The position numbers and the translations under genes are program-made. Positions 25,346 to 54,248 of a stretch of 64,000 bases of DNA are shown here, piece after piece (positions within the stretch are counted from its first letter, which is position 1; every line of letters starts with the position of its first letter). This stretch comes from Mantamonas sphyraenae STR306 (taxonomy: Eukaryota > Protista > CRuMs). The stretch spans positions 62,001 through 126,000 of the forward strand of contig JAPMXV010000029.1 in NCBI GenBank assembly GCA_026936335.1, read 5' to 3'. The notes below the pieces were generated by a model. That model saw only the letters and a program-made list of their open reading frames with translations, did no database searches and was not told where the DNA came from.

Positions 25346-28300
25346 TCATTGTGATGCAAGCAACCCTTGTGTCCCATGCGCTTCCTCAGTCTCGCTGTCG
25401 TTGTCATGCGTGTCCTCCTCGTCGCCACTGTTGGTCGCAGAGACAATGTCGTCGAGCTCGATGGCGTCGACTGTCGACTTGGTGGTGGAGGTCGTTGTCT
25501 TGGGAGCACGCTGCTTGACCTTGTACCGCATGATGAGAATCTGCACAAGGAGAAGACAGAGAAACATGGCCAGCAGGACGAGGACCGGAGAGAGGAGATC
25601 GGCGTCTGGCGAGATGAGGTCCATGCCTTTGACCTTATATGCGTACACAGCCGGGTGCTGTTCAAGGAAACACCAGAGGTTGCCAATCGACGTGTCGCCC
25701 AGTCGACACATGTACGAGCCGTGCTTGTCCATTTCTGCTCGAAGCATGCCCAAAAATGTGAATCTGATCGGGGACAAATTTGTGAAATGCATGAGCACGC
25801 CTTCGCGCACGCGTACGTAGAAGCCAGCCAGGAGGACTGTCGTTTGCAAGACTAGCGTGGCCACCACAATGCCAAGCGGGACTGCCTGCGTGAGCATGCC
25901 GCACACAATGCCGATCTGTGCGTACACAATCAGATTGAGCGACAACATCAGGCCATGGTACAGAAGCGTTCCTGCCTTCAGTCCAATGCCAGCCATTGGA
26001 AATGCCACAATGACAAAGACAAAGGGACCGGCAAACTCGCCAGCAGCGTACACCAGGTTCTCCGCCACGACCGAGGCCGCCGAAGAGCCTTTGCCGTTTC
26101 TGATCCTCGCCACGGTCGCCTGCGTCCTGACCGCTGCTCTGGCGCAGCAGGAAAAGGCTCGAGGGAACGTCGCCAGTGTCAGGGCGAAGAAGAGCAACGA
26201 GATGGTCTCATTCACTCCACGGGCCCACGGAGTTTCGCCGATCTGGAAGAAAATCGCTCCACAGACCAGGGCAAGGCCCACCACCTCGACCACCCTAGCA
26301 ATGTTCAACACTTCTGGGCGATAGCTCTTCCACTCTTGCTTAAACAGAGCTGCCACGAGAGTGAAAAAGTTGCTGCGACGTGTCGTCGCCGTTGACGATT
26401 CGTCTCCTCGAGCTGCGTCGGAGGCCTCTGCCGCCTCAACCATGTCCTTCTCCTCCTTTGACACACGAGCCTGCCAAACGGCAGCGTCCCACTCCTCCGT
26501 CTCTCCTGCCTGGTGTTCACCGAGATCACCGGCCCACCGGACTACGCCGTTGCCCTCGAGCCACACCAGCCTGGCGCCAGGAGCAACATCACGCACGTGT
26601 TGGGGCACGTCTCGCATGCTCACAATCACTGCCGCTTGCGTGCGCTCCGCGTAGTCCACAAGGGCGCGCATGAGCTGCTCCAGAGTGGCCGAGTCCTGAA
26701 AGGCATCGACGTCGTCCACAAGGAGCACGGGGCGTGCAAACAGCAGCTGCACACCCACACGCACCAGCTGCTGCTCTCCACGTGATAGTTGACCAAATGC
26801 AACCTGTTTCTTGTGCGCAAGCTCCAGTGCATCCAGCGTCGTGTCGATCAGCTCCTCCAGCATCCCCTTGCTGACCCCATTCTGGATGCGCTGCCGCGCC
26901 AACAGATTGCCATGGAAGCGCATGATGCCCGCCACACTCTCTTTCGGGTCAAAGACAGTCGTGTCGGTGCCCACATATGCGGCCGTGCTCCCGAGCTGCT
27001 TGCGATTCAGTTTCAAAATGTTTCGCCCGCACACGTGTACTCTGGAAGCAGTGGATATGCTCAGTCCTTGCATGTCCACCCCGCACACGTGTTTCAACAG
27101 AGCGGTCTTGCCGCATCCACAGCCGCCTGCGACGATGAGCACAGTGCCGCCTCGGAGCGAGCCCTGGCTGTTGACAACGGTGCCCTGGGCAGAATCGACA
27201 CGCAGGTGCCAGGAAAGCCCCACGCCATCTGCAGTGTTGACATTGGCGCGAGCGACGTCGGCACGCTCTTGCGCTGTGACGGGTTTGGCGACAACCGCCG
27301 TAGACGACTTGCCGGCCGCGCGTCGTCGTGCTACACACAGGCCGCACACGATGACGAGCAAAACGCCCACCACAATCACAGAAAACACCCAGCTGGGCAC
27401 GTCGCCTTGCTGATGGGCTGTGATGCCCAGCGGGTAGAGGGGCTTGATCTTTTCGCGGAGGAACGGGGCGTACGCAGGGTCGTGTCTGCAGAGCGCATCC
27501 GATGAGCACCGGAATCCACGCGGGAGGATTGGACCAAAGACCGCGTCTTCGTCTGCGAAACACTCACATGCAGGGAACGAAGGGAAGGGGAGTTGATCGG
27601 GATGCTCCGGTCCCGGTGGGTACGTCGGTGGCAAATCGGCTTGAGTGTACGTGGGAGGGTCGCCCACCTTGATGATAAACGCCATTCCGTCCTCTCTGTG
27701 GATGTCGATGTGACAGTGAGCGAAGAACACGCCAGGCTCAGTGGTGACGAGGGCGACCGCGACGGCTCCTCCCGCGGGGATCACAAAGGTATCGAGCAGA
27801 GCGGAAGTCCCCATCACTGCCTTTTTCTTCAACCGTGCCGTCGCCTCGGGTGTGGTTAGGTCCGTGTTCAGTCGACATCCCACGAGCGTGCAGTCGCGCT
27901 CGACATCGGGCACCGCGACTTCCAATACACGGAAGTGGATGCCGTGCAGGTGTATGTTGTGTGGGAAGGATGTACGCGAGCGAAACACAATAATGACCGT
28001 TGTGTTCTGGCGCAGCTCCAGAACTTGGGAGTGCGGGTGCAGATCGCGGTCGGCGGAGAAATTGGCGAGCAGCATCGGCTTGACTGGGTTCCGGTGCTGT
28101 GTAAACGGGCCGCCGTCGATGGCCACGAAGTGGCCGTAACTGGGTGATGGGTAAAAATCAAAGTCGACTCGCTTTTCTTGAAACCCGTGGGCAGTCGGAG
28201 ATTCGGGGGCATCCTCGAGATCAGGCCGCGTCTCCAGTGCTGTCGTACGCAGACACAGCGACGGGTCGAGGGAGATTTGCCAGCAGTTGAAGGTCTTTAG

Positions 28301-29579
28301 TTTCAGCGGGTCAGGACGCTCGCTGTGCTGTGGCTCGGGCACAGCGCTGTCCGGAACGGGCGTCCCTCCTGCAGTCACATACAGAATGCCCCGTACTTCG
28401 TGCAAATACCCCTGCTTCGGGTTCTCCAGTGTGCGCGCACGGATGTAAAATGCCGTGTCCGTCTGAACAGTGGGAACGGTGAACTCAAGATCAAACCGCT
28501 CGGCGGTGTGCAGTGACACTGCTTGCACCCGCAAAGGGATGTGATCGGAGCCGTCTGCAGCCACCACATCAAACTCGGGCACTCCATCGATCGTTACAGT
28601 GAAGGCGAATACTGCGCCCATGTTGATCAATCGCAAGCGGATCTTCTCGCCAGATTGCGCGCGCACAATGGCCCTCTCCTTCCCGTTCATCAGGCCTCCG
28701 TGCCATGCGACGGTGGCGACACGCATGCCATCCACGTCTTTGGCCACGGAGCCTTCGAGGCCGCCCACATTCTGCCAGAAAAGGAGACTGGCAGGGTAGG
28801 GGAAGTAGTCCTGCAACGTCAGGATCCGTTCGCCTGCACCCCACGCAAAGGCGTCCCCGCCGATGACAGAGGCTGCAGAGGTGTTTGCAGGATGGATGAT
28901 TAGTGGGCCGTGCACCAGATTCTGCCCGGTGGTCTCCAGGCCGCTGTGGGTCTGTGTGGGGCAGACAAAGAAGAGTGTGGCGCATTCGAGAGTCAGCGGC
29001 GGCAGAGGAGGCGGTTTGGCTGGGGCGGAGGCGGAGGAGATGCCTCATGTCGGCGCCTGCCAACTCTGCCATGGGCGAGCTCGGCACAGGCCCGTGCTCC
29101 GCTGGGGCGGAGGAGTTGCCTGGGCCTCTTGCTGCCATGGGCGAGCTGCCTTTGGGGCGCGCGCATGCGCCAGATCCGGGACGTGCCGCAAGTCCGCTGC
29201 AGATGTCACTCACATGGTACCAGTATGTGCCGGGCCGTTCGTGCAGCGTGTTGAACTTGTAATTCATACAGTGCCCAGGTGGGATACCCCATTGCGTCAG
29301 GCCAACCACACCGTCGAAAAGCAGGTTCCCGCGCATCTCCAGGCCGTGCCAATGCAGACTGAGAATTTCCTCCAGGTTGTTGCGCACGGTGACCTCCAGC
29401 GTGTCGCCTTTGCGCACGTGGATCGCCGGTGCCGTCATCCTGTTGTTTATCCAGGCCACTCGCAGCTTCTCCCCGCCGATGTGGTGCAGTCCGTTGGTTA
29501 CGTTAAACTCGTAACGCACCAGAGCACCATGCGTCGACACCACACAGACCAAGCACAGCAACAGAGTCCACTTGATCAT
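25346..29579 (-). CDS. Multicopper oxidase (laccase-like) - TM - ABCG half-transporter fusion, about 1323 aa; intron 28952-29213
   Basis: Signal MIKWTLLLCLVCVVSTHG; copper ligands SLHWHG, WYH|THS (completed by a cat|gtgagt...cacag| splice), PHNIHLHG, FAHCHIDIHREDGM; TM WVFSVIVVGVLLVIVCGLCV-ARRR; Walker A GGCGCGKT, LSRGEQQ, VLLVDD; ABC2-type membrane domain. No stop between oxidase and transporter. Confidence 0.9.
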
Positions 29580-29637
29580 TACCTTGCCCCCCCCGGCGCG
29601 GAAGAAAACCAAGCGCAGCCGCACAACCAACCCATTC

Positions 29638-30266
29638 ATGAGCGACACAGACGCAAGCGACATCCACATGGTGTCAGACGGCATGGCGGTGAACATCGTA
29701 CGTCCACCCCCTTCCTCCCCCCCTCCCTCCATCCCTAACCCCCCCCCCCCCACCCCCCCACACAGACCGCCAAGCACAACCGCAAGCTCCTGGGCGCACT
29801 TGCAGCCACGGCAGCCGTCGTCCTGGTGTTTCTGATCCTAATCATGGCTCAAGTGGGCGTGCTTGAAGCACGTTTGAAGCCCGCACCCTGCGCACGCATC
29901 ACAGGCGCCCAATTGGCCGACGGCGAGCGGGGTGTGTCGACTCATGTTCTGGATGTTGCTGCCGGCCTACCGGGCAGCAACATCACCGTCACGCTGTACA
30001 AGAAGGGCAGCAACGGCGCCTACGCCGTCGTGGGCTCCGGCGCAACGGGCAGCGACGGACGCGCCGACCTCATGGCGGCCAGCCAGATGAGTGCCAACAC
30101 GACGTACAAGCTGCACTTTGCGCTCGAGGCGTACTTTGCAGCCACCGGCACCCCGGTCGTGTTTCCAGAGGCGGAGGTGGTGTTTCGCGTCGGCGGCGCC
30201 GTCGAGCATTATCACATGCCGCTGCTGCTGAGCCCCGGCGGCTACACGACGTACAGGGGGTCTTGA
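29638..30266 (+). CDS. URAH: 5-hydroxyisourate hydrolase (transthyretin-like) with N-terminal signal-anchor; intron 29698-29765
   Basis: STHVLD, DGR, HYHMPLLLSPGGYTTYRGS* signature. An atc|gtacgt...ccctaac...cacag| intron gives MSDTDASDIHMVSDGMAVNI-TAKHNRKLLGALAATAAVVLVFLILIMAQVGVL in frame. Confidence 0.93.
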
Positions 30267-30792: not shown

Positions 30793-32324
30793 ATGGCCTT
30801 CCGAGTGTGTGCCTGTGCGGCCGATGGTGCGGCTGCTTGTCCAGAAACGGTTAAACCCTGCCCCCCCGCCTCCTCGCCTCGTGACGACGACCCATGCGTG
30901 GCAGACCTCACTGACCCTCCCCGTCGTCGCTATCTCTCCAGGCTGCCCCCTCGTCGACTGAAAAGGGCGATGCCCTGACGCCTACAAAGGGAGGCAACAA
31001 ACGGGTGAATGTGCTCATCATGACAAACGCCATGCTCCAGATCTTCCTCACAGGAGGTGTTGTGTACGGTTTCCCGTCCCTTGTGGCCAAGGCAAGCAAG
31101 GAGGGTGTGCTGTCGTCTGTGTGTGCCAACCCGGTGCGCGGAGAGCTGTGCACCGAGCAGAACGTGATTCTGAACCTGAGCTATGTCCTGGGGGGTCTTG
31201 TGACACAGGCGTCGCGCCTGTGGGTTGGCGCTGCGCAGGACTACTTTTCTGCCACGCGAGAGAACCCGTACATGGTCATGGGAATTGGCGTGCTCGTGCC
31301 GCACATCCTGGCAGCGATCACGCTTGCGTTTGCGACCGAGAGCGCGTTCCTGTTTTATCTGGGCGTTATGCTGCTCGGCTTTTCTGGGCCAGGGACGCAG
31401 ACGATTGCGGTGCAGCTCGCGAGCCACGAAGAGTTTGCCGACCGCAAGGACTTGCTTGTTGGTGTTTCCGTGACCTTCTTTGCGGCGTCATCTGCCGTGT
31501 TTCTGGTCATGGAGCGGGTTGTGGCCTCGTGGACAGTGTGCTTCCTTGTGTACGCCGGCATACTTGTGCTGATGGCGGTTGTGTCTGCGCTGGTGTACGG
31601 ACAGGAAAGTCCGATTCTGAAAGTGAGGGCAAACGACAACGAGGTGCGGGTCGTGCGGTCCACATACGATCGTGACGCGCAGCCACTCGCCCGCATCGTC
31701 TTTGGGCGCGAGTTTGCGATGTTCCTCCTCGGCTGGAAGACCACTGTCCTCGTTTTTTCACAGGGGTTGTTGGGGACGGTTCCAACGTATCTTCTGCAGG
31801 CCGGGTTGTCCAATGCGCAGGTTATCGAGTACTCGGCTGTTCTCACTGCCATCAACTCTGCCAGTGGAGTGTTGGCGCCGCTGCACGGCTTGCTCATAAG
31901 GCGGTTTGGGCACCGCGCGGGAATGCTCACCGTGGCGTTGGCAAACCTGGCCAGTGGGGTGCTGCTGCTCACAAGCACTGCTCCGGTCTCTTTCTACTTG
32001 TTTTCAATCACGTTCTCTTATGGGAGACGAGGCCTCTTCACCAGCGGCATTGCCTATAGCGGGTCCTTCTCGAACCTGCACTTGGGAAAGGTTATCGGCG
32101 TGGCACTGTCTGCAAGTGCGTTTGTGGCGGCTGCAGCGCAAGCTGGCATGGTCGCATGGGGTCTGGGAGTGGGCAGTTTCGTCGGACCCTACGCTGTCAT
32201 GCTGGGGCTTGTCGGCGTTGCTCTGATCTACGCATCCATCACAAACGTCAGTGGTCACGTGATTGAACCAGTGGAGACGGCCGAGTTGGTTACAGTCGCT
32301 GCAGTGCGCCGGGACTCGCCATAG
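30793..32324 (+). CDS. MFS transporter, SLC43/Fmp42-like (about 12 TM); 5' exon 30793-30849 tentative, alternative start 31020
   Basis: GGVVYGFPSL..KEGVLSSVC...C.EQNVILNLSYVLG matches the SLC43 TM1/Cys-loop pattern; many hydrophobic helices; acceptor ctctccag| at 30941. Confidence 0.75.
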
Positions 32325-32379: not shown

Positions 32380-32537
32380 CGAGGTGTTCTGGATGGGATG
32401 GAAGTGGTGGGGATGTGATGGTGATGAATAGGGAGGAGCGGGAGGCGCATGTGGAGGAGAGAGGGTGGGAAGGATGGATGACACTTCCGGATGAGGTACT
32501 GGAGAGGGTGATTAGGAGGGTGGAGAGAGGGGGGTGA
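32380..32537 (+). pseudogene. Relic of the F-box-like C-terminal tail, tail-to-tail with giant gene 2
   Basis: VMNREEREA..GWMTLPDEVLERVIRRVERGG* resembles VMNGEEREA..WMTLPDEVMERVIEWVGRG in the 5550-7044 product. Confidence 0.75.
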
Positions 32538-32567
32538 CTGGAAAGGGTGTGGGAATGTAGGGCTGGT

Positions 32568-35500
32568 TCATTCGAGGCGCTGGCGTTTGGAGGAGGAGGA
32601 GGAGGAGGAGGAGGAGGAGGAAGGGTTTTTGCGCTTGGGGAGGGTGAACGAGGGGATAGGGTAGGCGTTGACGAGTGCGATGGTGGTGGGTCGGGTGGTG
32701 ATGTGGGGTGTGATGCGGTCGATGAGGGTGTGGAGGAGGGTGTGCAGTGTGGCGTCGCTGGGTTTGGGGTTGTCGAGCCAGGCGATCTTGAGGGAGAGGG
32801 AGGTGACGCCGCGGGTGAGGGTAGTGCTGATGGCAGGTTGCACCTGCTGATAGGTGGTGTGTGGTCTGAGGAGGCGGACAAAGAAGGCCAGGTCGACAGG
32901 CGGCACGCCAACGTTGCCCAGCGCCAGGATGATGTGTCGCACCAGAGACAGCAGGTCGCCGTGGATGATCAACTCACGCAGTGCCTGGTGCTCGTGCGCG
33001 TACTGATGGCGAGGGTACTTGGCTGAGCGTGCCTTCATGTATGCCAGCAGCGTCTGGAACTCCCGCGCCGTGCAGCTGCCACGCTCGTCGCTTGTTCTCT
33101 GCACTGCCCAGCCACTGCGCACAGACTCGGGATGCCACTTGTCCACCTCGGTGATGGTGAGGTGGTGGTCATAGTCGCATTGAATCCAGTGCGGGTCGCT
33201 GTCGCTATCAGCAGGGCGTCGTGCTTTCTGCAGCCACAGCTGGGTCTGCTCGTGCTCCTTCCAGGTGGTGGGATGGGGTCTGTCGCCGAGAGTGTCCATC
33301 TCTGTCATGAGCAGGTGGAGGAGGGCGTAGTTGGGGTCGCCGTGGTCGTGTGGCTCCTCCAGCCAGCACACCTTCAACTCAGCCTTGGTCACACCCATGG
33401 CCAGGCCAGCGTGGAGGATGGCATGGCTGCACGCCGTTTGATCCATCTCACGGCCGTGAAGGGTGAGGCAGAGTGCCATGTCGCCCTGGGAGAGGGGAAT
33501 GTTGCCCAGAGCGAGCTGAATCTGTCGGACAAGCGTCAGCAGCGTGCCATGACAGACCACAACACGTGCCTGCAGGGTCATGAGGTCGGAGATGTCGTCG
33601 AGAGGATGCTCGTTGGCCAGGGTGTGCATGTGCTTCAGCAGTGCCGTGTGCTCCTCCTTGTTGCTGTGGCTGCGCCTGCGCCACCTCTTCCAGCCACAGC
33701 GCACAACGCCATCTGGCAGTCCATCCTCCACGGCCATCTTCTCCTCCTCTGTGGGCTCGGGCAGAACTAGCTTGGGGATGTCGAGGGTGTTGACGGCGTC
33801 AGTGGTGGTGGGGCGGGTGGTGATGTGGGGTGTGATGCGGTCGATGAGGGTGTGGAGGAGGGTGTGCAGTGTGGCGTCGTTGCGTTTGGGGTTGTCGAGC
33901 CAGGCGATCTTGAGGGAGAGGGAGGTGACACCGTGGCTGAGGGTGATGCCGATGGCACCTTGCACCTGCTGGTAGGTGAGGTTTGGCCTGAGGAGGCGGA
34001 CAAAGAAGGCCAGGTCGACAGGCGGCACGCCAACGTTGCCCAGCGCCAGGATGACGTGTCGCACAAGGGACTGCTGGTTTCCATTGTTGATCAGCTCACG
34101 CAGTGCATGGAGCTCGTGTGTGTGCTGATGGCGAGGGTGCTTGGCTGCACGTGTCTTCATGTGTGCCAGCAGCGTCTGGAACTCTCGCGCCGTGCAGCTG
34201 CCACGCTCGTCGCTGGGAGTACCCTTGGTCCAGCCACTGCGCACAGACTCTGGATGCCACTTGTCCACCTTGATGGTGGTATCGAGATGGTGGTCGTAGT
34301 CACATTGTGTCCAGTGTGGGTCGCTGTCGTTGTCAGCAGGGCGTCGTGCTTTCTGCAGCACCAGTTGGGTCTGCTCGTGCTCCTTCCAGGTGGTGGGGTG
34401 GGGCCTGTCGCCGAGAGTGTCCATCTCGCTCATGAGGAGGTGGAGGAGGGCGTAGTTGGGGTCGCCGTAGTCGTGTGGCTCCTCCAGCCAGCACACCTTC
34501 AACCCAGCCTTTGTCACACCCATGGCCAGACCAGCGGCGTGGATGGCACTGCTGCACGCCATTTGATCCATGCCACGGCCGAGAAGGGTGAGGCACAAGG
34601 CCATGTCGCCCTGGGAGAGAGGAATGTTGCCCAAAGCGAGCTGAATCTGTCGGACCAGCGTGCGCAGGGTGCCATGGCAGACCACAACACGCGCCTGCAG
34701 GGTCATGAGATCGGTGATGTCGTCGATGGGATGCTCATTGGCCAGGGTGTGCATGTGCTTCAGCAGTGCCGTGTGCTCCTTCTTGTTGCTGTGGCTGCGC
34801 TCGTCACTGGGCCCCATTGTCCAGCCACTGCGCACAACACCATCTGGCAACTTGATCTTCTTGTCCACGCCTGCTTTCTTCCGTGCGCCGGTGTCTCCGT
34901 TCATGGCACTCCTTGCCCGTGTGCTCGACGTTCCTGTCTCGGTGCCACTGCCAGCCGTGACCCTGCGCCTGCGCTGTCCGTTGCCTTTCATCTTCTGTGG
35001 ACCAGTACGACGGCGAGCGTGCCCTCTACCGTTGCCTCTCGGCTGCCACTCGTCCGCGCCCTCCTGCTCCATGTCGTCGCTGTCGTCGTCGCTGTCATCT
35101 TCCGGCATGTACTCCTCATCCATGGCATCACCAGCGTCTGCAAACCTGAATGAACCCCCAGTTTCCACCTCGTCGTCCACGGGCTGCTGGGGTGCGTCGT
35201 TTGCCTCGCCGTCTACCTCGTACGCCTCCATCCATGAGCTGCTCATCCACTCTGAGTTACTGGAGGGTGACCGTGGTTCAATGTGGCCAAAGTTCAGTAC
35301 CATCAGGTCCTCCACGTCACCAGTGTCATGTGTGTGCGTATCCTGGTCTGCGTCGTCGTCGTCGTCGCTGTCTCCAGTCTGCCGTGTGGCCTGGTGGGAG
35401 GAGGAGGACGATGTGGTGGTGGTGGATGTGGTCCGTGTGATGCCGACAAACGCAGGGCTGATGCGTTTGGGGACGCGGTTGTGGTTCGTGGTGGGTTGAG

Positions 35501-42176: not shown

Positions 42177-42419
42177 GCAGGGGAGGAATGGAGGAAAGCG
42201 ACGGAGGCATGGAGGAGGCGTGGAAGCGAGAGAAGCGGGCAGTCAGAAAACGGAGTGGAAGGCACAACGCACGCTGGGTAGGTGTTGGGTGTGTGTTGTT
42301 GCTTGGGAGTGCTTGAGTAGTCGTTGTCCATGGCGGTGGTGGTACTGAAGTGCATGTGGGTTGTGTTGGACTGTTGGAGGGTGTTGTGGGTGTTGGTGAT
42401 ATTTTGGTTGAAGGCGGAC

Positions 42420-43947: not shown

Positions 43948-45459
43948 ATGTCTGTCAAAGTGATTGTTTTGGTGCTGCTGGCCGCTGTCTGCATGGCCGA
44001 AGTGAACACGTGCTCCATCGTGCCCGCGTGCAAACCGCGCAATCGCCACCCGTGCGAACCAGGCTCTGCCACCTGTGGACCCTGTCTGGACGGCTTCACC
44101 ACGTCCGCCGGCACTGGTGCAGCCAACACGCCGTGCGAAAAGGCGACGAGCGAGGACGAAAAGGCCGTCTCGGACCTGGAGCTGCCCGTCATTGACGTCT
44201 CGATCTTCATCGACGAGACCAATGCCAGCGCCGAGGAAAAGGCCAAAGAGGCCAAGCGTCTGTTGGAAGCCGCCACTGGCCCTGGCTTTATGTTTCTCAA
44301 CGTGACGCGCACAGGTACGTTGCCGCAGGAAAAGTTGTGTGTGTGCATTCCCTCTTTGTGGCGCGCCTGCTTCCCGCCTATGGCCTCGCCTGTGCACTCC
44401 CGTGTGTGCATGGGCATGTGCAGGGCATAGAGCATGTGTTGCCGACATCACGGGACACACGGGGTGTGGCGCTGGGGGCGCCGTTTGGACGGTTGGGACG
44501 CGAGCGTCCCACATCCGGCTGCTGGTTTGGGAGCTCGGGTGTGGACGCAACGGGTGCGAGGCACTGACACGCATGTTGACAGGCATCACGGAGGAGCTAG
44601 TTTCATCGACGTTTGCCGATGTGGCTCAGTTCTTTGATCTCCCGCTCTCTGCCAAGATGGAGCTTGCGTACAAGGACAACACGGCCAACACGGGCTATGT
44701 GGCGGTCGGTGCGGAGGCACTGGACAGCGACGCGGCGGAAGGCGACCCGAAGGAGAGCCTGGACATCTCGCTGCAGTACCTGAAAGAGACCGAGGCGATC
44801 AACAGCTCTGCGCTGGTGTCGTACTGGAGCGCGATGGAAAGGGTCAAGGACGCGTTTCTGACGGGCCTGGGCCTGTCGCTGGAGCTGGACGACCCGGCCT
44901 ACTTTGTCGAGAGGCACAACAAGCAGGACAACAACCTGCGGATTTTGCATTGTACGTTGTTTCCTGTAACCGTGCCGCCTTGCCGTTGCGCTGACACCGT
45001 GGTACAGACCCGCCGACGGCAACCAAGCCGCTGTACCGTGCGGGGCCCCACACAGACTATGGCAGCATTACGCTGTTGATGCTGAAGGAGGGCGAACGGG
45101 GCCTGGAGGTGTTTGATCGCAGGAGCGGAGGATGGGCAGAGGTGGAGCCGATTAGCGGCACGGTTGTGGTCAACATTGCCGATCTGTTGCAGCGCTGGTC
45201 GAGCGACCTGGTGCAGTCGACGGTGCACCGCGTGGTGTCGATGGGCGACTCGCACACGCGCTCGCGGTACAGCATCCCGTACTTTGTGAACCCCAACTTT
45301 GACCACGTGGTGAGCTCGTCGGAGCTTGCGGCCATCAGCCCCAAGATCGACGCGTCGCTCGCTGAGCAGGCCTACCCGGACATCCTCAGCCTGGACTACC
45401 TGACGCAGCGCCTCAGTGCCACGATCCCGGTCGAGGACAACGACAAGGATGAACTTTGA
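43948..45459 (+). CDS. 2-oxoglutarate/Fe(II) dioxygenase (IPNS/DIOX_N type) with signal peptide, Cys-rich domain and C-terminal KDEL; introns 44315-44582 and 44952-45007
   Basis: MSVKVIVLVLLAAVCMA; C..CKPRNRHPC..TCGPCLDGF..C; LPVIDVS, GFMFL, GDPKESL, LRILH|YPP, HTDYGSITLL, STVHRVV, RYSIPYF, DKDEL*. Both gtacgt..cag introns restore the frame. Confidence 0.92.
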
Positions 45460-46520: not shown

Positions 46521-47853
46521 TCACCTCTGCGCCACAAACACCAACGCCGTCCCCAGCAGCGACGCCGTCTGCGCGAGCATGGCCGACGTCACACGCAGCA
46601 CGCCAAACAACCTCACCGCAACTGTGCGGCCGCGCAGCGTCTCTACGAGCAGCGACACGTCCTTTGCATCGACACACTGGCCCAACTCCCACGCTTCGAG
46701 CTGCAGCTGGTCGCGTTCACCCTCCCTGCCCACGACGCTGTCCACCACGACTTGACCATCCCCGCAGACGTCGACGCCGTTGCACACGGCTTCCGCCAGG
46801 AGGAGGGAGCCCGTGTGCAGCCTGCCCATGGGCAACAGCTCGATGACCATGACCACGAGGGTGGAGAGCAGGAACCAGGCCTGGCCCAGCAGGGAGGTCA
46901 CGGGCAGCGACTGCGACGTCAGGATGGACAGCGCCATGGTGACGACGAGCAGCCCGCCAAAGACATTCTTGAGCGACAGGGTCCACGCGAGGACGCCCTG
47001 GAAGCCCTGGATGTCCTGGACGACGCCACGATGCATGCGTGAGAGCCAGCGGACGCGCGGCGTGGTCAGGCTGGCAAACGACGCCATGATGGACGACACC
47101 TGCGCCAGCCGGCTGGCCAGCGTGAGGAGAAAGAGCGGGGCGAGAGCAGGCGTCAACGTGAGGATGGCGCTGTCTTGCAGGGCAAAGGGAAAATCGACCA
47201 GGACGATGGACGACGGGAGCGGCCACGAAAACGCCTCGTCGGTGCCTTGGTCGAGCACGATGGTAAACACCACCACGACAAAGATGCTGATGGCAAACGT
47301 CGACAGGGCCAGGACCCAGCACCACCAGGCCAGGGTCTCGAGACGGCTGCGCTGGGCCGCTTCGACGGCCTCGCCTTGCTCGGACGTGGCGGCCATCTGC
47401 GCCAGCTCTTTGGCAAAGAGGCCAGTCTGTGTGCGGTAGGCAAGGCCGACTGCCCAGCCGCGAGGGAGCACAAATGCCATCATGAGGTGTGTGACCGTGA
47501 GCTGTGTCTGGACACGGTGTCAGCGGAGCGGAGGACGCGCGCGCTGCCTGCCCATACGGTACCTTCCACAGCGTCGCTGCGACCTGCAGCGCCCAGTCAC
47601 TCCCTCGGCCATAGATAAAGGCGCGAATGATAAAGAGTGCACAGCGGGCCAGCTGGACGACGAGGAGGGCGCGGACGACAAAGGTCTGCCGGGCGCCACC
47701 GCGCGGCTCGAGGCCGACAAACCAAAACAGGTCGCACAGGCGGCCGAGAGACGGGAGCAGCTGTGCACGCTTGCTTTGGATGGGGTCAACGATCTGGACA
47801 AGGTCGTCGTCGTCCTCCTCCGCGGTAACGTCGACCAGCTCGGGTTCCTTCAT
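46521..47853 (-). CDS. Gustatory-receptor-like 7TM protein (putative 7TM ion channel superfamily), about 425 aa; intron 47508-47562
   Basis: An aag|gtaccg...gctgac...tccag| intron joins the two ORFs in frame. About 7 hydrophobic segments and no signal peptide. C-terminus VAVRLFGVLRVTSAMLAQTASLLGTALVFVAQR* resembles the GR/GRL TM7 signature (G-h-h-x-h...T-Y-h-h-h-h-h-Q). Confidence 0.65.
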
Positions 47854-47888
47854 CGCGTTGCCTGCGCCCGTGGGTGCACTTGATCACC

Positions 47889-50800
47889 ATGCTCTACGTG
47901 AACGGCAAACGGCACGATCTGACGGGCACTGAGCCTACGACTACGCTGCTGGAGTACCTGCGCGCAAACCGGCTCGTGGGCACCAAGCTGGGGTGCGGCG
48001 AGGGAGGATGCGGAGCATGCACGGTCTTGCTGCAGACGCTGGTTGACGAGACGGTGCACACGCGGTCGTGCAACGCTTGCTTGACGCCTGTGTGGGCTGC
48101 AGAGGGCTGCGCCGTGATTACCATCGAAGGGCTGGGCAACACAAAGGAGATGCACCCGCTGCAGGAAGCGTTGGCAAAGGGCCACGGCAGCCAGTGTGGG
48201 TTCTGCAGCCCGGGGATCGTCATGAGCATGGCCGCCGCCCTGCGCAACAACCCCAAGGCCACCATGCTGGAACTGGAAGAGGCACTGGACGGTAGGTGGG
48301 GGTTCTGGGGAGATTTGTGCACATTGGGAGGTTGCTGACGTATTTTTTTTCTGGGTGCCCACAGGAAACCTGTGCCGCTGCACGGGCTACCGTCCCATTG
48401 TCGACGCGTACAAGCCCTTTGCGAGCGACTACTCGGGGGCGTGCTGCTCGTCGTCGTCGTCGTGCTCGTCGGGCGGATGCTGCGGCGGTGGCAAGGGAAA
48501 AGACGGCTGCGAGCAGCGGCTGAGCGAGCCGATCTTTCCGTCAAAGCTGCGGTCGTACGAGCGGGGCGAGCTGGAGGTGCGCTCACAAGCAGGAGACACG
48601 ACGTGGTACCGGCCTGCGTCGCTAGAGTCGCTGCTCGCGCTGCGTGCGGAGCACGGAGAGGCGCTGCGGGTGGTCATGGGAAACACAGAGCTCGGCATCG
48701 AGACTCGTTTGAAGGGCGCGCACGTCGCTGCGTATGCACACCCGGTACTGATCCCGGAGCTGCAGGAGCTGTCGCATGCCGACTCGACCTTGACCATTGG
48801 CAGCGCCACCACCCTCAGCACGCTCAAGTCGTACCTGGAGACGGAGCTGGGCGAGGATGCAGTGGCTGCGGCCATGGCCGACCAGCTGCGCTGGTTTGCA
48901 GGCAACCAGGTGCGCAACATGGCGAGCATCGGAGGCAACATCATCACGGCGTCGCCCATCAGTGATCTGATCCCTCTCCTCGTGGCCGCAGGCGCCACAT
49001 TCCGCCTCATCGACACCGACGGCAAAGTCGACGATGTGCCCTCGGGCGACTTTTTCCTGGCGTACCGCAAGACGGCCCTCAAGGCCAACCAGCTGCTGCA
49101 CAGCGTGCTTGTGCCGCTGACCGGACCCAACGACCACTTTGCCAACTTTAAGCAGTCGCGGCGCAAGGACGACGACATTGCGATCGTGAGCGCGGGCATG
49201 CGCGTCACAGTGAGCGACGGTGTCGTGACGGCGGCCACGCTGGCGTACGGCGGCATGGCAGCCACCGTCATGACGGCCAAGCTGGCAGGCGAGGCGTTGG
49301 TGGGCCAGCCCTGGACGATCGAGACGGTGCGTGCGGCCATGGAGCTGCTGGACACCGACATGCCGCTGGGAGAGAAAGCACCGGGAGGCATGGTGCCATA
49401 CCGTCGCCGCCTGGCGGCCGTCTTCTTGTACAAGTTCTTCCTGCGCACCCAAGGCCACCCAGAGATGGAGGAGCCGGAGCGGGCGCCCATGAAGGGAGAG
49501 CAGGTGTACTTTGTGGACGACGAAGAAGCTGGTCCCGTGCACAAACCGCTGGTCCATGCATCGGCCTATCAACAATGTACGGGACAGGCGTCGTACACGA
49601 ATGACACTGTTCCCACTGTGGGCGAACTGCACGCGTTTCCGGTGCAGTCAACGTGCCCGAGCGGCAGGATTCTGAGCGTCGACGTCGAGGAGGCGCTCGC
49701 CATGCCTGGCGTGGTGGAGTGGGTGTGCGCAGAGGATGTGCCCTTCAACGTGACGGGCGAGGTGGTGAAGGACGAAGAGGTGTTTGCCAGCGAGCGGGTG
49801 ACACATGTGGGCCAGTGGCTCGGTTTGGTCGTGGCCAAATCTCACAACGAGGCACGGGCGGCCGCAAGTCGAGTCAAGGTGCAGTACGACGCAGACGCGG
49901 AGCCCATCCTGACGATCCAGCAAGCGATTGAAGCCAAGAGTTTCATTCCATGCTCGGAGCGGACGCTGGCGTGTGGTGATGTTGATGCCGTGTTTGCACA
50001 TGCGGATCATGTACTGGAAGGACGCCTCGCCCAAGGACCGCAAGAACACTTCGCCCTAGAGCCCGTTGCAATCGTTGTTTCCCCAGGAGAGGACGGGGAA
50101 AAAATGGATGTGCAAGCGTCTGTGCAGGGTCCCATGATGGTGCAGAAAGCGGTTTCCGAGGCCCTCGGCATTTCCGCAAATCGCGTCAATGCTTTCGTTA
50201 AAAAATTAGGCGGGGGCTTCGGTGGAAAGGAAACCCGGCCTGCAGTGCTTGCCGCTGGTGTCGCTGTTGCTGCGCACAAGACGGGGACGGTGTGCAGGCT
50301 GGTGCTGGATCGAGACGTGGACATGAGCACAACCGGCAGACGCGGCGGCCTGCTGGCGGACTACAAGGTCGCCTTTGACTCCGACGGTACCATCACGGCC
50401 GTGGAGCTTGCTATGTATGTGGACGCCGGCTGCAGCACCGACCTGAGCGCGGCTGTTTTGGAACGCGCCATTCTGCACTGCACAAATGCGTCCGGCATCG
50501 AGTCCGTGAGAGCCAAAGGCGTGTGTGTCAGGACCGCAACGGCGTCAAACACGGCCTTTAGGGGCTTCGGAGGGCCAGAGGCGATGGTGATCTGGGAGCG
50601 CGTCGTCGAGCACGTGGCCGACAGGCTCGGTGTCCGGCCCGAAGTGATCCGCGAGGTCAACATGCTGCAGGTGGGCGCAAAGACGATCTATGGGCAGGAG
50701 GTGGAGAACAACGCAGTGCCTGCCATGTGGGAGTCGCTGAAGGAAAAAATGAGGTGGGAAGAGCTGCTGCAAGAGACGGCCGAGTTTAATGCGTCGCACG

Positions 50801-51795
50801 AGTACCTGAAGCGCGGCGTGTCCATGATGCAAACATGCTATGGGCTCGCTTACGGACATCTCGCACTCAATCAAGGGACTGCCGTGGTTTCAATTCAGCA
50901 GATTGACGGCACTGTGCTGGTGAGCTGTGGCGGCGTGGAAATGGGGCAGGGCTTGTTCAGCAAGGTCCTTGCCGTGGCGGCCCAGACCCTTGGCGTGGAC
51001 GTCGACATGGTGTTTATCAAAGAGACCTCGACGGCAACGATTTCAAACGCGTCTGCGACCGCAGCGAGCATGGGCAGCGACATCCACGGAGCCGCCGTCC
51101 AAGCCGCCTGCTTGAAGCTGATCGAGAGGCTGCAACCATACTTGGATGCGGCAAACGGCGACTGGAAAAAGGCAGTCAAGAGTGCGTACCTGGCGCGGGT
51201 GTCGCTCATGGAGCTAGCCTTCCACAAGGTACCGTTGTCGGGCTACTCCTGGCAGACGGGCGAGGGTACGCCGTACGTCTACCATACCACGGGTGTCGGT
51301 GCATCTGTGGTCGAAGTGGATGTGCTGACAGGCGAGTCCCGCATTCTGGACGTCAAGCTCATCATGGACGTGGGCACATCGATCAATCCGGCGATTGATG
51401 GCGGGCAAATCGAGGGAGCCTTTGCGCAAGGCGTTGGCCTGTATACATTGGAGGAAGTTGTGGCAGGCGCCCGAGATGAGCACAGTTGGTTGCCGCCTGG
51501 CAAGATTCACACTCTGGGCCCTGGCACATACAAGCTGCCCACGGTGGGCAGCATGCCTCGCGAGCTGGACGTCGAGCTCTGGCGCAGCGATGGCAATCCA
51601 AGAGCAGTGTATGGTTCCAAGGGTGTTGGTGAGCCCCCGCTGGCGCTTGCCATGGTGGTGTACTTGGCAATGAGGGACGTGGTACGTGAGGTGCGGAAGG
51701 AGAAGGGCTTGGATGCAGAGTTTGTTTTGGAAACTCCAGCGACGTGCGAGCGTGTGGCCATGGCCATGGTGGGAGAGGCAGAGATGAGTGTATGA
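47889..51795 (+). CDS. XDH: Xanthine dehydrogenase (2Fe-2S, FAD, molybdopterin domains), about 1277 aa; intron 48292-48364
   Basis: GTKLGCGEGGCGACTV, QCGFCSPG, DG|NLCRCTGY, FAGNQVRNMASIGGNI, RRKDDDIA, GGGFGGKET, LERAILH, TAFRGFGGP, GVEMGQGL, GQIEGAFAQG, SKGVGEPP. Confidence 0.95.
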
Positions 51796-52139
51796 ATGGA
51801 TGAGGGTTGATCCCTGGGTGCACTCTTTCTTGTGTGTCCTCCACTCCCCGCCCCCTTTCCACCCACCCCACCCCCCTTCCCCCCAACCCCCCCAACCCAC
51901 CAACCCACCATGACCTACCCAATCCCCCATCCACGACCCACTCCATTGACCCCCCTCCCCCCACCACACCCCCACCCCCCTCCCCCCCCCCTCTCTCTCT
52001 CAATCTTCCGGACGCTCCCCACACGTCTCGCCGTCTCCCACACACAACCCACAAAACCAACCACCCACCCCTCCTACCTCCCACCCAACCCAACCCACCT
52101 TCCCCAACCCACCTCTCCCCAACCCACCTCCCCCCCCAT

Positions 52140-54248
52140 GACCACGACAACCCCCCTCACACGCCCCTCCCTTCCGCGTCCTCTCCACCCCCTCCGACCT
52201 CCCCCGAGGCCCTTGTCCACCACATCCTCAACAACCTGCCCACGCCTCTCCCTCCGGCGAAAACCGCCTCCCTCACCGACGCCCTCCACGCCATCCTCCG
52301 CGACGCCTTTCACCCGTCCTCGCCCCTCTCTGCCGACGCCGCGCGCCACCAGGCCGTCGCGCGCATCCACACCGCCCTCACCGACGCCGCCTGCGACCCC
52401 GACCCTCTCGCCCCGTTTGCCGACCTCTACGACCGCCTCGTCCACCTCGACGCCTCCTCCCTCGCCGAGCCCGCCACAGACGCCTCCTCCATCCTTGTCA
52501 CGCCGGTCCCGCCTCCGCTGGCCACCCGCGTCCGCGCCTACCTCTTTAACCTCCTCGCCATTGCCCACTGGCTGCCTCGCTACACACGCGACGACCTGCA
52601 GAACGACCTCATTGCCGGCCTCACCATCGGCATCATGCTTGTGCCCCAGGGCATGGCCTACGCCCTCCTTGCAAACATGCCTCCCATCTACGGCCTCTAC
52701 TCGTCCTTTGTGCCCCTCATCATCTACGCGTGCTTTGGCACGTCGCGCCAGCTCAGTGTCGGCCCTGTGGCTCTGGTTTCGCTTCTCATTGCCGAGAGTG
52801 TGTCGCTGATCACCCCTCCGGGCACCGAGCTTTTTGTACAGCTGAGCATTGCGCTTGCGCTCCTTGTTGGACTCTTGCAGATCGCCATGGGGCTCCTTCG
52901 CCTGGGCATCCTGGTCTCCTTCCTCTCGCACCCGGTCATCAGCGGCTTTACCAGTGCCAGCGCGCTGATCATCGGCGCCAGCCAGCTGAAGCACCTGTTT
53001 GACGTCAAGCTGCCGACCACACACAACTTTTGGGAGCTGCTGTACGTCATTGCCGAGCGCCTGCCGCAGTCCAACTGGATTTCCATCCTGGTTGGCCTCG
53101 GCGGCGTCGCGATCCTGCTTGCGCTCAAGATGCACCCCAAGCTGAAGCGCGTCCCGGGCGGTCTGGTCGTCGTCATCATCGGCACCCTGGTCGGCTGGGG
53201 CATTGTGTCTTCGGGGGCCCGCCTGCGTGTGCTTGGGCCCATTCCGGCGGGCCTGCCGCTCCCGGCTGCGCCTGCCTTTACCTGGGAGCAGCTGGGCGAG
53301 CTGGTCCCTGCGGCCGTCACCATCAGCTTTGTCTCGTTCCTCGAGAGCATTGCTGTGGCCAAGCGCTTTGCCAGTGCCCACGACTACGACATCGACAGCA
53401 ACCAGGAGCTGGTTGGCCTGGGGGCGGCCAATCTCGTCGGCGCCTTTTTCCGCGCCTTTCCCACGACGGGCGGCTTCTCTCGCACGGCGGTCAACGACGC
53501 CGCCGGCGCCCGGACGCCCATGGCCCAGGTGTTTGGTGCGCTCGTCATCATGCTCACCCTCCTGTTTCTCACGCCCCTCTTTTACTACCTGCCCACCGCG
53601 GTCCTTGCCGCCATGGTCCTCGTTGCCGTGCGCAACCTGATCAACCTGCGTGAGCCGCGTGAGCTGTGGCACAGCAGCAAACAGGACTTTGCGATGCTGC
53701 TGCTGGCCTTTCTGGCCACGTTGTCCATCGGCGTCGAGCAGGGCATCCTGATTGCGATGGCTGTGTCCTTGCTGCTCGTCGTGCTGCGCGTGGCCCGCCC
53801 GCACAGCGCGGTGCTCGGGCGCCTCCCGGGCACGGTGGCGTACCGCAACGTGAAGCGGTACCCGCACGTCGAGACGTTTGCGCACATTGCCATCCTCCGC
53901 GTCGACGCACCCCTGTTTTTCTTCAACATGGACTGGTTCCAGGCCAAGGTCGATCGCATTGTGCGCCGCCTCCACCCGGAGCTGTACACGCTCATCATCG
54001 ATGCCAGCGCAATCAACGACGTCGACAGCGTCGCCCTGCACACCATCGAGCACCTTGCCGACGACTTTGCGGCCAGCAATCGCCGCATTGTCTTTGCCGC
54101 CCTCAAGGGCCCTGTGCGCGACAAGTTTGACCTCCACGGCATGGACTGCATCCCTGCCGATGCGCGATACCTCACTCTCCACGACGCCGTGGTGGCCGAG
54201 TGCCAGAAGCGCCCTGACGAGCACGAGCACAGCGACGAGGAGGTGTAG
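52140..54248 (+). CDS. SLC26/SulP anion transporter with STAS domain; 5' end uncertain in C-rich low-complexity sequence
   Basis: DLIAGLTIGIMLVPQGMAYALLA..PPIYGLYSSF..GTSRQLSVGP, NQELVGLG, GGFSRTAVN; STAS IIDASAINDVDSVA. Confidence 0.93.
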   Translation, partial: DHDNPPHTPLPSASSPPPPTSPEALVHHILNNLPTPLPPAKTASLTDALHAILRDAFHPSSPLSADAARHQAVARIHTALTDAACDPDPLAPFADLYDRLVHLDASSLAEPATDASSILVTPVPPPLATRVRAYLFNLLAIAHWLPRYTRDDLQNDLIAGLTIGIMLVPQGMAYALLANMPPIYGLYSSFVPLIIYACFGTSRQLSVGPVALVSLLIAESVSLITPPGTELFVQLSIALALLVGLLQIAMGLLRLGILVSFLSHPVISGFTSASALIIGASQLKHLFDVKLPTTHNFWELLYVIAERLPQSNWISILVGLGGVAILLALKMHPKLKRVPGGLVVVIIGTLVGWGIVSSGARLRVLGPIPAGLPLPAAPAFTWEQLGELVPAAVTISFVSFLESIAVAKRFASAHDYDIDSNQELVGLGAANLVGAFFRAFPTTGGFSRTAVNDAAGARTPMAQVFGALVIMLTLLFLTPLFYYLPTAVLAAMVLVAVRNLINLREPRELWHSSKQDFAMLLLAFLATLSIGVEQGILIAMAVSLLLVVLRVARPHSAVLGRLPGTVAYRNVKRYPHVETFAHIAILRVDAPLFFFNMDWFQAKVDRIVRRLHPELYTLIIDASAINDVDSVALHTIEHLADDFAASNRRIVFAALKGPVRDKFDLHGMDCIPADARYLTLHDAVVAECQKRPDEHEHSDEEV

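Follow-up and report, generated by a model that had tools for sequence, protein, structure and literature searches.

A gene cluster of Mantamonas sphyraenae that may handle urate outside the cytosol: a multicopper oxidase-ABC fusion beside an HIU hydrolase

Canonical uricolysis uses a cofactor-free uricase (Uox), 5-hydroxyisourate (HIU) hydrolase and OHCU decarboxylase, and is peroxisomal in eukaryotes. Its course from xanthine dehydrogenase (XDH) to urate, HIU, OHCU and allantoin, which is the end product in most mammals, resembles what we propose below for a locus of Mantamonas sphyraenae. The conversion of urate to HIU has been reinvented with other cofactors by the flavin hydroxylases HpxO and HpyO and by the membrane cytochrome c oxidase PuuD; HIU hydrolase and OHCU decarboxylase are more widespread than Uox, which suggests that further oxidases exist (PMC4562309). 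HiuH (YedX) of E. coli and Salmonella, like the Mantamonas enzyme as predicted here, is an extracytoplasmic transthyretin-like hydrolase with a link to copper or oxidation, in an organism without uricase (PMC9302797; PMC13252058). E. coli hiuH shares an operon with msrPQ, under the control of CusSR and HprSR (PMC9302797). HiuH is, however, soluble and part of a two-component regulon, whereas the Mantamonas enzyme is predicted to be membrane-anchored, adjoins a multicopper oxidase (MCO) and is clustered with XDH.

Mantamonas sphyraenae is a deep-branching protist. Its FALCON assembly comprises 25.06 Mb in 78 contigs with 59.19% G+C, a BUSCO completeness of 91.4% and telomeres at both ends of 59 contigs (PMC10492846). 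The genome is compact, with about 2.7 kb per gene. The window analyzed here was a stretch of 64,000 nucleotides with a G+C content of about 60%, and the genome-wide searches were six-frame searches over 25,061,354 bases in 78 contigs. A sequence-only reading of the window had described a cluster at 25346-54248 consisting, apart from an inserted giant gene (about 32400-42960), of MCO-ABCG, HIU hydrolase, an SLC43-like protein, a 2OG dioxygenase, GRL, XDH and SulP. Pfam and sequence comparison confirmed this gene set and bore out the order and identities of its members, except that two labels (SLC43-like and GRL) proved weaker. The features of the locus are as follows.

25346..28951, minus strand: MCO-ABCG exon 2, encoding the remainder of the first cupredoxin domain, the second and third such domains and a TM helix, then the nucleotide-binding domain (NBD) and the ABC2-type membrane domain; stop at 25346
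28952-29213, minus strand: MCO-ABCG intron, GTGAGT...CACAG
29214..29579, minus strand: MCO-ABCG exon 1, encoding the signal peptide and the first part of cupredoxin domain 1 (Cu-oxidase_3, 89.6 bits)
29580..29637, no strand: divergent gap of 58 bp with the MCO-ABCG and HIU hydrolase start codons at its ends
29638..29697, plus strand: HIU hydrolase exon 1, 20 codons for the cytosolic tail, with ATG and an in-frame GTACGT donor
Between the two HIU hydrolase exons, plus strand: intron of 68 nt, C-rich, with a CACAG acceptor
29766..30266, plus strand: HIU hydrolase exon 2, encoding KHNRK, a TM helix (signal anchor), the transthyretin-like catalytic domain and the YRGS end
31020..32324, plus strand: MFS transporter, generic MFS_1; its open frame has the first ATG at 31020
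32571..42242, minus strand: giant repeat-rich gene 2, an open frame of 3224 codons lying between the MFS and 2OG oxygenase genes
43948..45459, plus strand: 2OG/Fe(II) oxygenase, a multi-exon gene whose product has a signal peptide, a Cys-rich stretch and KDEL at the C terminus
46521..47853, minus strand: GRL-like multi-pass membrane protein resembling gustatory receptors
47889..51795, plus strand: XDH paralogue, interrupted by an intron of 73 nt (48292-48364)
51804..54248, plus strand: SulP/SLC26 anion transporter (Sulfate_transp 382.9 bits, and STAS)

The HIU hydrolase is a typical member of its family. It matched PF00576 with 104.7 bits, the only gene match to this family in the whole genome, and alignment with bacterial HIU hydrolases showed that the catalytic His, Arg and His and the YRGS end were invariant, which identifies the enzyme at the level of sequence. 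Because this lone gene keeps every catalytic residue, some source must supply HIU or a closely related compound. The protein had been described as anchored, and the well-formed first exon and intron and the signal-anchor helix (Kyte-Doolittle score 2.9) agree with that description; the predicted topology is type II, with the catalytic domain facing away from the cytosol. The CACAG acceptor motif is common to the HIU hydrolase, MCO and XDH introns. An internal ATG is present at 29844, and initiation there would give a cytosolic enzyme. In contrast to the canonical peroxisomal pathway, the Mantamonas hydrolase has a signal anchor and no peroxisomal signal, and its step is predicted to occur outside the cytosol.

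A second departure from canonical uricolysis is that neither Uox nor OHCU decarboxylase was detected genome-wide. The sequence-only reading had seen neither enzyme in the window, and this held for the window and extended to the whole 25.06 Mb: the HMM search for Uox (PF01014) returned zero matches and not even a first-pass candidate, and the six-frame search for OHCU decarboxylase found none. Two known substitutes for Uox, HpxO and PuuD, were likewise not found in the genome. The best HpxO score (NF033623) was 41.9 bits, where the cut-off is 500, the flavin monooxygenases of M. sphyraenae resembling Coq6 or VioC/KMO types, and PuuD (PF06181) had no match. Six-frame searches of the genome also detected no allantoinase, allantoicase or AllC. 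Because these three enzymes and OHCU decarboxylase were all not found, the locus cannot serve to release nitrogen from purines, and the earlier label of a purine-degradation cluster fails in that sense. At most, it would take urate as far as allantoin, and do so outside the cytosol.

The product of the XDH gene would supply the urate for such a conversion. Its product contains the Pfam domains Fer2, Fer2_2, FAD_binding_5, CO_deh_flav_C, Ald_Xan_dh_C and MoCoBD_1/2, and scored 814 bits to rat XDH vs 691 to aldehyde oxidase. It retains the xanthine-specific residues Glu802, Arg880 and Glu1261 and the motifs GGKETR, FRGFGGP and GVGEP. By these sequence measures it is a true xanthine dehydrogenase, as had been claimed. 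A second xanthine-type XDH paralogue, overlooked earlier, lies on another contig. The HIU hydrolase gene is 17.6 kb from the cluster XDH, or 8 kb leaving out the recently duplicated giant gene.

The MCO-ABCG fusion contains the Pfam domains Cu-oxidase_3, Cu-oxidase, Cu-oxidase_2, ABC_tran and ABC2_membrane. The four copper motifs are all unbroken, and every copper ligand is kept; HWHG and WYH|TH bridge the splice junction between exons 1 and 2, and exon 2 holds HNIHLH and HCHIDIHREDGM. It is the sole three-domain MCO in the genome. The chain runs from a signal peptide through the MCO domains to a TM helix (residues 644-662), RRR and the NBD. Because of this layout, and of the signal-anchor helix in the hydrolase, both the MCO domain and the catalytic domain of the HIU hydrolase are predicted to be extracytoplasmic. 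The two genes diverge from the 58-bp gap, which probably contains a shared promoter. The GRL-like and XDH start codons are also head to head, 35 bp apart, a similarly tiny divergent gap; such very short gaps may merely reflect the compact genome.

Human ABCG2 is a urate exporter, and the fusion had been likened to it. Both place the NBD ahead of the membrane domain, in reverse order, have the ABC2_membrane fold and carry Cys in the loop that precedes the last helix; in the fusion, hydropathy maxima match most of the ABCG-type membrane-domain helices. The similarity is low, however (25-29 bits to the ABCG1, ABCG5 and ABCG8 structures), and although Walker A is intact, the catalytic Walker B Glu is replaced by Asp and the H-loop His by Arg. 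Because of these replacements, and because the nearest relatives lack Walker A, the analogy with ABCG2 is weakened and the proposed ATP-driven urate export doubtful. With the catalytic Glu and switch His substituted, the ABCG module probably forms a platform in the membrane, or a slow conduit gated by ATP, and not a fast pump.

Fusions of MCO and ABC domains that share the copper motif HCHxxxHREDGM with the Mantamonas protein also occur in diatoms and metagenomes. Those of the diatoms Pseudo-nitzschia multistriata and Thalassiosira exigua and of uncultured protists have the same MCO-ABC2 architecture and 31-37% identity to the Mantamonas protein; the closest relatives lack Walker A, and more distant members have a canonical NBD. 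Our literature search found no published description of the MCO-ABC2 fusion. Diatom MCOs are usually treated as Fet3-like ferroxidases (PMC4460010). In M. sphyraenae, however, the FTR1 permease was not found in the genome, which argues against a Fet3/Ftr1-type role in iron uptake. The synteny of MCO-ABCG with HIU hydrolase expected from the sequence-only reading was not seen in the contexts examined. None of six genomic contexts of fusion relatives, from diatoms and metagenomes, had an HIU hydrolase neighbor, and for this reason the general job of the fusion family is probably something other than urate oxidation. Among 160 prokaryotic HIU hydrolase loci, one had an MCO within its flanks, no more than chance, and 51 contained an XDH subunit. 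The linkage of XDH with HIU hydrolase is thus a genuine pathway signature.

We propose, tentatively and at well below even confidence, that the genes form a cluster specific to this lineage, which deals with urate outside the cytosol and does not salvage nitrogen. The XDH paralogue, judged by its family and conserved residues, would form urate in the cytosol, and the urate would reach the endomembrane lumen or the cell surface. There a cluster-encoded oxidase would turn urate into HIU; that such a luminal oxidase feeds the HIU hydrolase is a possibility we take seriously while holding it short of even. The leading candidate is the MCO domain of the fusion, although its identity as that oxidase is in itself rather doubtful. 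One-electron oxidation of urate leads to the urate radical, dehydrourate and HIU. The type 1 copper of the MCO would take single electrons from urate, one by one; two urate radicals would disproportionate to give dehydrourate, which with water would form HIU, and the MCO would reduce O2 to water without releasing H2O2. The anchored HIU hydrolase, transcribed from the same 58-bp gap and predicted to lie on the same side, would convert HIU to OHCU. Spontaneous decay of OHCU would yield allantoin, the likely end product because OHCU decarboxylase and allantoin-degrading enzymes were not found. No MCO is known to act as a physiological urate oxidase. Urate nevertheless interacts with enzymes of this class, for it inhibits laccase or bilirubin oxidase cathodes (PMC2864295, citing Shin, Kang and Heller 2007).

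Thus the earlier suggestion that an MCO stands in place of uricase gains from the failure to find Uox, HpxO or PuuD, from the shared predicted membrane side and from the 58-bp gap, and loses from the altered ATPase residues, the absence of HIU hydrolase neighbors in relatives, the single MCO among the 160 prokaryotic loci and the second XDH on another contig. For the urate pathway as a whole, the lack of these three oxidases, the anchored hydrolase, the side of the MCO and the XDH stood, whereas nitrogen-yielding catabolism and synteny did not, and export became doubtful.

A somewhat unlikely alternative is that the HIU hydrolase acts as an orphan enzyme, detoxifying HIU or urate hydroperoxide that arises with no dedicated enzyme, and that the job of MCO-ABCG is unrelated. 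Such products would then come, for example, from reactive oxygen species or metal catalysis inside food vacuoles or at the surface of the cell, with urate from XDH as a sacrificial antioxidant; MCO-ABCG would oxidize copper, iron, manganese or phenols, or export or polymerize surface material, and would have at most a stress-responsive promoter in common with the hydrolase. E. coli hiuH is induced about 190-fold by copper via CusSR, and also by HOCl via HprSR (PMC9302797), and a preprint from 2026 describes specific breakdown of urate hydroperoxide by HiuH in the periplasm (PMC13252058); in Mantamonas, too, the HIU hydrolase is predicted to be extracytoplasmic and no uricase was detected. The wide occurrence of the fusion family without HIU hydrolase neighbors fits this alternative, and the missing OHCU decarboxylase and allantoin-degrading enzymes suit detoxification better than catabolism. 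A free-living marine flagellate, however, has no obvious external urate or peroxidase-made urate hydroperoxide, and the pairing of the hydrolase with the sole three-domain oxidase, in matching topology, would be left as coincidence.

It is unlikely that HIU hydrolase, MCO-ABCG, MFS, 2OG oxygenase, GRL and SulP are neighbors by chance and share no function, in which case the proposed pathway would be a post hoc construction from the genes present in the window. The failure to find the synteny in the relatives' contexts examined and the repeat- and transposon-rich nature of the region are consistent with chance, as is the composition of the cluster, three of whose seven genes (MFS, GRL and SulP) have no demonstrable purine link. 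The MFS carrier is generic by Pfam (MFS_1), its PDB search was blank and its Atlas matches were generic MFS clusters, so the SLC43-like label was not sustained. The GRL-like protein had neither a Pfam nor a PDB match; Atlas language-model features placed it at 0.95 to 7tm_7, Trehalose_recp and DUF3537 clusters, which keeps the GRL label as a lead to kinship with the 7tm_7/DUF3537 families. The SulP identity holds, and we found no supporting evidence for its suggested link to cofactor supply; its open frame begins 9 nt past the XDH stop and has 277 codons without ATG. Giant gene 2, in which no Pfam family exceeded threshold, is a roughly 90% identical inverted paralogue of a second giant gene at 11768-23861 and is not part of the pathway. 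A DDE_3 transposase and the duplicated giant genes mark the surroundings as repeat- and transposon-rich. Against chance, the probability that the lone HIU hydrolase gene would lie within 17.6 kb of one of the two xanthine-type XDH genes in 25 Mb is about 0.003, and linkage of these two enzymes is a known pattern, as in the 51 prokaryotic loci above.

The secretory 2OG/Fe(II) oxygenase, overlooked in this role earlier, is a second candidate urate oxidase in the cluster, albeit an improbable one. It would use 2-oxoglutarate and O2 to hydroxylate C5 of urate, forming HIU in the ER or secretory lumen. The protein contains DIOX_N and 2OG-FeII_Oxy, an N-terminal hydrophobic stretch and a ...DKDEL end, and its signal peptide and C-terminal KDEL would place it on the same membrane side as the HIU hydrolase. 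The gene lies between HIU hydrolase and XDH; discounting giant gene 2, a recent duplicate, its distance to the MFS gene is about 1.6 kb. Among solved structures, its catalytic exon is closest to thymine dioxygenase, a nucleobase hydroxylase (86 bits vs 68 for the next match), but the likeness is confined to the C-terminal half, and the structure search found no solved relative of the N-terminal exon. Relatives of the oxygenase were present in none of the 160 prokaryotic HIU hydrolase loci, and the substrates of the DIOX_N family are very numerous. The fungal 2OG-dependent xanthine hydroxylase XanA, which replaces a molybdenum enzyme, provides a parallel; it belongs, however, to a different 2OG family, the TauD type. 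Finally, a canonical uricase overlooked by our search is very unlikely, because the assembly is largely telomere-to-telomere with a BUSCO completeness of 91%, and the HMM search gave no first-pass candidate.

If either the MCO, as we tentatively favor, or the 2OG/Fe oxygenase does oxidize urate, it would represent a further, undescribed kind of urate oxidase.

The window holds a real, unusual urate cluster in a genome in which the urate oxidases Uox, HpxO and PuuD were not found. The identities given by the sequence-only reading to five of its genes held: the MCO-ABCG fusion, in which a three-domain multicopper oxidase (MCO) is joined to an ABCG-type half-transporter, the 5-hydroxyisourate (HIU) hydrolase, the 2-oxoglutarate (2OG) oxygenase, xanthine dehydrogenase (XDH), and the SulP carrier. 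The label SLC43-like for the MFS carrier was not supported; the protein matched only MFS_1, it had no solved relative at E<=1, and its Atlas neighbors were generic MFS or Nodulin-like proteins.

Genes of the cluster and the giant genes beside them (window positions)
11768-23861, plus: giant gene (3200-4000 codons, as is the second), with no Pfam family above threshold
28951-25346, minus: MCO-ABCG exon 2, resuming at THSG
29579-29214, minus: MCO-ABCG exon 1, signal peptide and first cupredoxin domain up to WYH
29638-29697, plus: HIU hydrolase exon 1, 20 codons, ending at a GTACGT donor
29766-30266, plus: HIU hydrolase exon 2, KHNRK, hydrophobic helix of about 26 residues, transthyretin-like domain, end YRGS
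Downstream of the HIU hydrolase: MFS carrier, generic MFS_1
32571-42242, minus: second giant gene, with no Pfam family above threshold
43948-45459, plus: 2OG/Fe(II) oxygenase of DIOX_N type, signal peptide, Cys-rich stretch, C-terminal KDEL
46521-47853, minus: GRL-like membrane protein, no Pfam or PDB match, language-model features 0.95 to gustatory-receptor families
47889 (start), plus: XDH
Last gene of the series: SulP carrier

The giant genes are about 90% identical to each other, inverted, and each consists of units of about 1.1 kb repeated in tandem; they lie on either side of the block of MCO-ABCG, HIU hydrolase, and MFS carrier like long inverted repeats. Elsewhere in the window about 1.8 kb is duplicated in tandem (54996-57925; 96% identity, copies offset by about 1.1 kb), and an intact-looking DDE_3 transposase open frame (8988-10043, plus strand; 94.8 bits) marks a mobile element in the region. 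Within 51796-52640, the SulP open frame opens 9 nt past the XDH stop and runs for 277 proline-rich codons without an ATG. Its Sulfate_transp domain begins upstream of the first Met, and the true start may lie in an upstream exon or involve some form of read-through.

The gene inventory was determined by six-frame profile searches over the whole genome (25,061,354 bases in 78 contigs; the G+C content of the window is about 60%). The published FALCON assembly of M. sphyraenae has 25.06 Mb in 78 contigs with 59.19% G+C, is 91.4% complete by BUSCO, and has telomeres at both ends in 59 contigs (PMC10492846). Because this assembly is near-complete, the absence of a gene from it carries weight. Spliced models of MCO-ABCG and the HIU hydrolase were used locally for motif numbering, hydropathy, and seeding of a local HMM.

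Neither uricase nor OHCU decarboxylase had been visible in the window, and the whole-genome searches extended both absences: there was no candidate for Uox (PF01014), for which control genomes gave matches, and none for OHCU decarboxylase (PF09349). In a check of the genome for HpxO (NF033623), where the cut-off is 500 bits, no score exceeded 41.9 bits, and the flavin monooxygenases of the genome were rejected as HpxO, since by NCBIfam comparison they look like Coq6 or VioC/KMO types. PuuD (PF06181) and the allantoate amidohydrolase AllC gave no match in the genome. Allantoinase (TIGR03178) gave only 22-24-bit matches within one 1187-codon frame; this frame probably encodes the dihydroorotase section of a multifunctional protein. 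Allantoicase was not found in the genome by a search that was weak, because the controls were silent as well. With these downstream enzymes missing, the cluster cannot serve purine degradation for nitrogen.

The HIU hydrolase is the sole transthyretin-family gene of the genome (six-frame search, 105.6 bits), and its domain exon scored 104.7 bits with PF00576, for which the curated cut-off is 25.3. HIU hydrolases are set apart from the hormone-binding transthyretins by a catalytic His, Arg, and His and by a C-terminal Tyr-Arg-Gly-Ser. When the Mantamonas protein was aligned with eight bacterial HIU hydrolases, H5, R44, H95, and Y108-R109-G110 were invariant. The gene model has one C-rich intron of 68 nt with the acceptor CACAG; the same acceptor occurs in the MCO and XDH introns, which supports the model. 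The hydrolase is predicted to be extracytoplasmic, held by a signal anchor. A word-indexed search for anchored eukaryotic relatives returned only bacterial proteins, of 40-50% identity.

The XDH of the cluster has the full set of seven Pfam domains and scored 814 bits with rat XDH vs 691 with aldehyde oxidase. It retains GGKETR, AFRGFGGP, and GVGEP, which contain (bovine numbering) the xanthine-binding residues Glu802 and Arg880 and the catalytic Glu1261. There are three XDH-family genes in the genome, on contigs C29 (the cluster), C53, and C35. The C53 enzyme is 60% identical to that of the cluster and keeps the xanthine residues; its neighbors are unrelated. The third gene (G000:C35:216541-221535, equal to L107:1042-6036; 1665 codons) is a divergent member of the XDH/aldehyde oxidase family that lacks the xanthine-binding motifs and has an N-terminal PB1 domain; we know of no other instance of this domain combination. 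The HIU hydrolase lies 17.6 kb from the cluster XDH, a distance with a chance of about 0.003 given two xanthine-type XDH genes in 25 Mb, and XDH, which served as the positive control in a survey of 160 prokaryotic HIU hydrolase loci, was present at 51 of them. On these two grounds we take the linkage of XDH and hydrolase as probably functional.

An intact, single-copy HIU hydrolase in a genome in which Uox, HpxO, and PuuD were not found implies another origin of HIU, or of a close relative (e.g., urate hydroperoxide). This compound would be formed at the site of the hydrolase, predicted to lie outside the cytosol, and the pathway would end with allantoin, to which OHCU decays spontaneously.

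One source would need no dedicated enzyme: the hydrolase may clean up urate oxidized by other means, while the MCO does another job. Escherichia coli has a periplasmic HIU hydrolase, HiuH, and no uricase, and its hiuH gene is induced by copper and HOCl (PMC9302797); according to a 2026 preprint, HiuH degrades urate hydroperoxide (PMC13252058). The Mantamonas hydrolase appears to be like HiuH in that it is predicted to be extracytoplasmic in an organism in which Uox, HpxO, and PuuD were not found. That some oxidase encoded in the cluster supplies the oxidation of urate instead is possible but, in our judgment, somewhat doubtful; the clean-up reading is its main rival. The form of this proposal that we tentatively put forward, with the same reserve, is that either the MCO domain or the ER-luminal 2OG oxygenase, each an enzyme kind new to the reaction, oxidizes urate together with the anchored HIU hydrolase, outside the cytoplasm and without producing peroxide.

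The predicted MCO-ABCG gene has one intron of 262 nt (GTGAGT...CACAG). Its product matched, in order, Cu-oxidase_3, Cu-oxidase, Cu-oxidase_2, ABC_tran, and ABC2_membrane, i.e., three cupredoxin domains and a transporter. A three-domain MCO was defined by three cupredoxin domains and the motifs HxHG, HxH, HxxHxH, and HCHxxxHxxxxM; the protein has the three domains, and each of the four copper-ligand motifs is intact in it (as HWHG, WYHTH, HNIHLH, and HCHIDIHREDGM). The nearest solved relatives of the oxidase are fungal laccases, at no more than 59 bits. ABC_tran (41 bits) precedes ABC2_membrane (51 bits), and this nucleotide-binding domain (NBD)-first order is that of ABCG half-transporters, with ABCG1, ABCG5, and ABCG8 themselves matched only weakly. 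A simple hydropathy scan (19-residue window, threshold 1.6) showed a signal peptide and a strong transmembrane helix at residues 644-662, followed by RRR and the NBD; beyond the NBD, hydrophobic segments account for most, not all, of the helices expected of an ABCG-type membrane domain, and a Cys-bearing loop precedes the last helix. This layout predicts an oxidase domain in a lumen or outside the cell and an NBD in the cytosol.

The NBD contains Walker A (GGCGCGKT) and signature (LSRGE) motifs. A competent ATPase would also have an Asp-Glu Walker B and an H-loop His; here Walker B is Asp-Asp, the Glu being lost, and the position aligned to the H-loop His is Arg. The nearest relatives of the fusion have no Walker A motif, and more distant relatives are canonical. 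Because of these losses, export of urate by MCO-ABCG in the manner of ABCG2, part of the pathway first imagined for the cluster, is doubtful.

The proposal that the MCO stands in for uricase is attractive, and part of its basis stood. MCO-ABCG is the only three-domain enzyme of the two MCO genes in the genome, and its copper motifs are intact. Its start codon lies 58 bp from that of the HIU hydrolase, in divergent orientation, and the two proteins are predicted to face one and the same side of the membrane. Oxidation by single electrons takes urate through dehydrourate to HIU. Urate inhibits biofuel-cell cathodes built on multicopper oxidases (PMC2864295). In the literature searched, no paper was found on a laccase acting as a urate oxidase; PMC13691922 cites a rice paper that links laccase with a transthyretin-like protein. 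The expected synteny in relatives failed: an HIU hydrolase neighbor was absent from all six MCO-ABC fusion contexts read (L002-L006 and L009) and from three short contigs of relatives with a full NBD (L103-L105). The fusion family is widespread, with members in diatoms and in uncultured protists that are 31-37% identical to MCO-ABCG, and its lack of a hydrolase neighbor in the contexts read argues against the MCO as the oxidase. The presence of an MCO at only 1 of the 160 prokaryotic loci counts against it as well, and such short divergent gaps may be typical of this compact genome (the GRL-like and XDH start codons, head to head, are 35 bp apart). We consider it unlikely, though testable, that the MCO is the missing urate oxidase.

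Among the metagenomic relatives, P0004, a fusion of MCO and ABC2-membrane domains, has as its last domain an isochorismatase-family hydrolase (residues 1132-1314), predicted to be cytosolic; the domain may be genuinely fused, or the gene call may have merged two genes. The literature searched contained no paper on MCO-ABC fusions.

The other candidate in the cluster, overlooked in the sequence-only reading, is the 2OG oxygenase, which could hydroxylate urate directly. Thymine dioxygenase, a nucleobase hydroxylase, is the best solved relative of its catalytic exon (86 bits), and its signal peptide and KDEL predict a luminal protein; however, no solved relative was found for its N-terminal exon, and its relatives occurred at 0 of the 160 prokaryotic HIU hydrolase loci. 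For oxygenases of the DIOX_N type, residence in the ER lumen is uncommon.

A role of the MCO as a Fet3/Ftr1-type ferroxidase is weakened because no FTR1 permease (PF03239) was found in the genome. The second MCO of the genome (G000:C15:196093-197499, equal to L014:4093-5499, minus strand) has two domains, Cu-oxidase_3 and Cu-oxidase_2, preceded by about 200 additional residues at the N terminus, and is possibly a relative of copper nitrite reductase; being two-domain and set among ankyrin-repeat genes, it was not considered relevant to the pathway.

The conversion of urate to HIU has been invented several times, by the cofactor-free Uox, by the flavin enzymes HpxO and HpyO, and by the membrane cytochrome c protein PuuD. 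HIU hydrolases are more widely distributed than the known urate oxidases, and unknown urate oxidases are therefore expected. The near-complete genome of M. sphyraenae, whose lineage lies close to the base of Amorphea, has retained XDH together with an intact HIU hydrolase, and Uox, HpxO, and PuuD were not found in it. Two candidate oxidases adjoin the hydrolase and are predicted to share its side of the membrane, so the question is directly testable. If either oxidized urate, urate oxidase would have been invented independently for a fifth time, and for the first time in a eukaryote outside the peroxisome; a peroxide-free copper urate oxidase would hold interest for the treatment of gout and tumor-lysis syndrome and for urate biosensors. 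If the hydrolase is instead a detoxifier, the recent finding on E. coli HiuH would reach free-living eukaryotes. Under either reading of the hydrolase, the widespread protist family of MCO-ABCG fusions, which has no assigned function, merits study.
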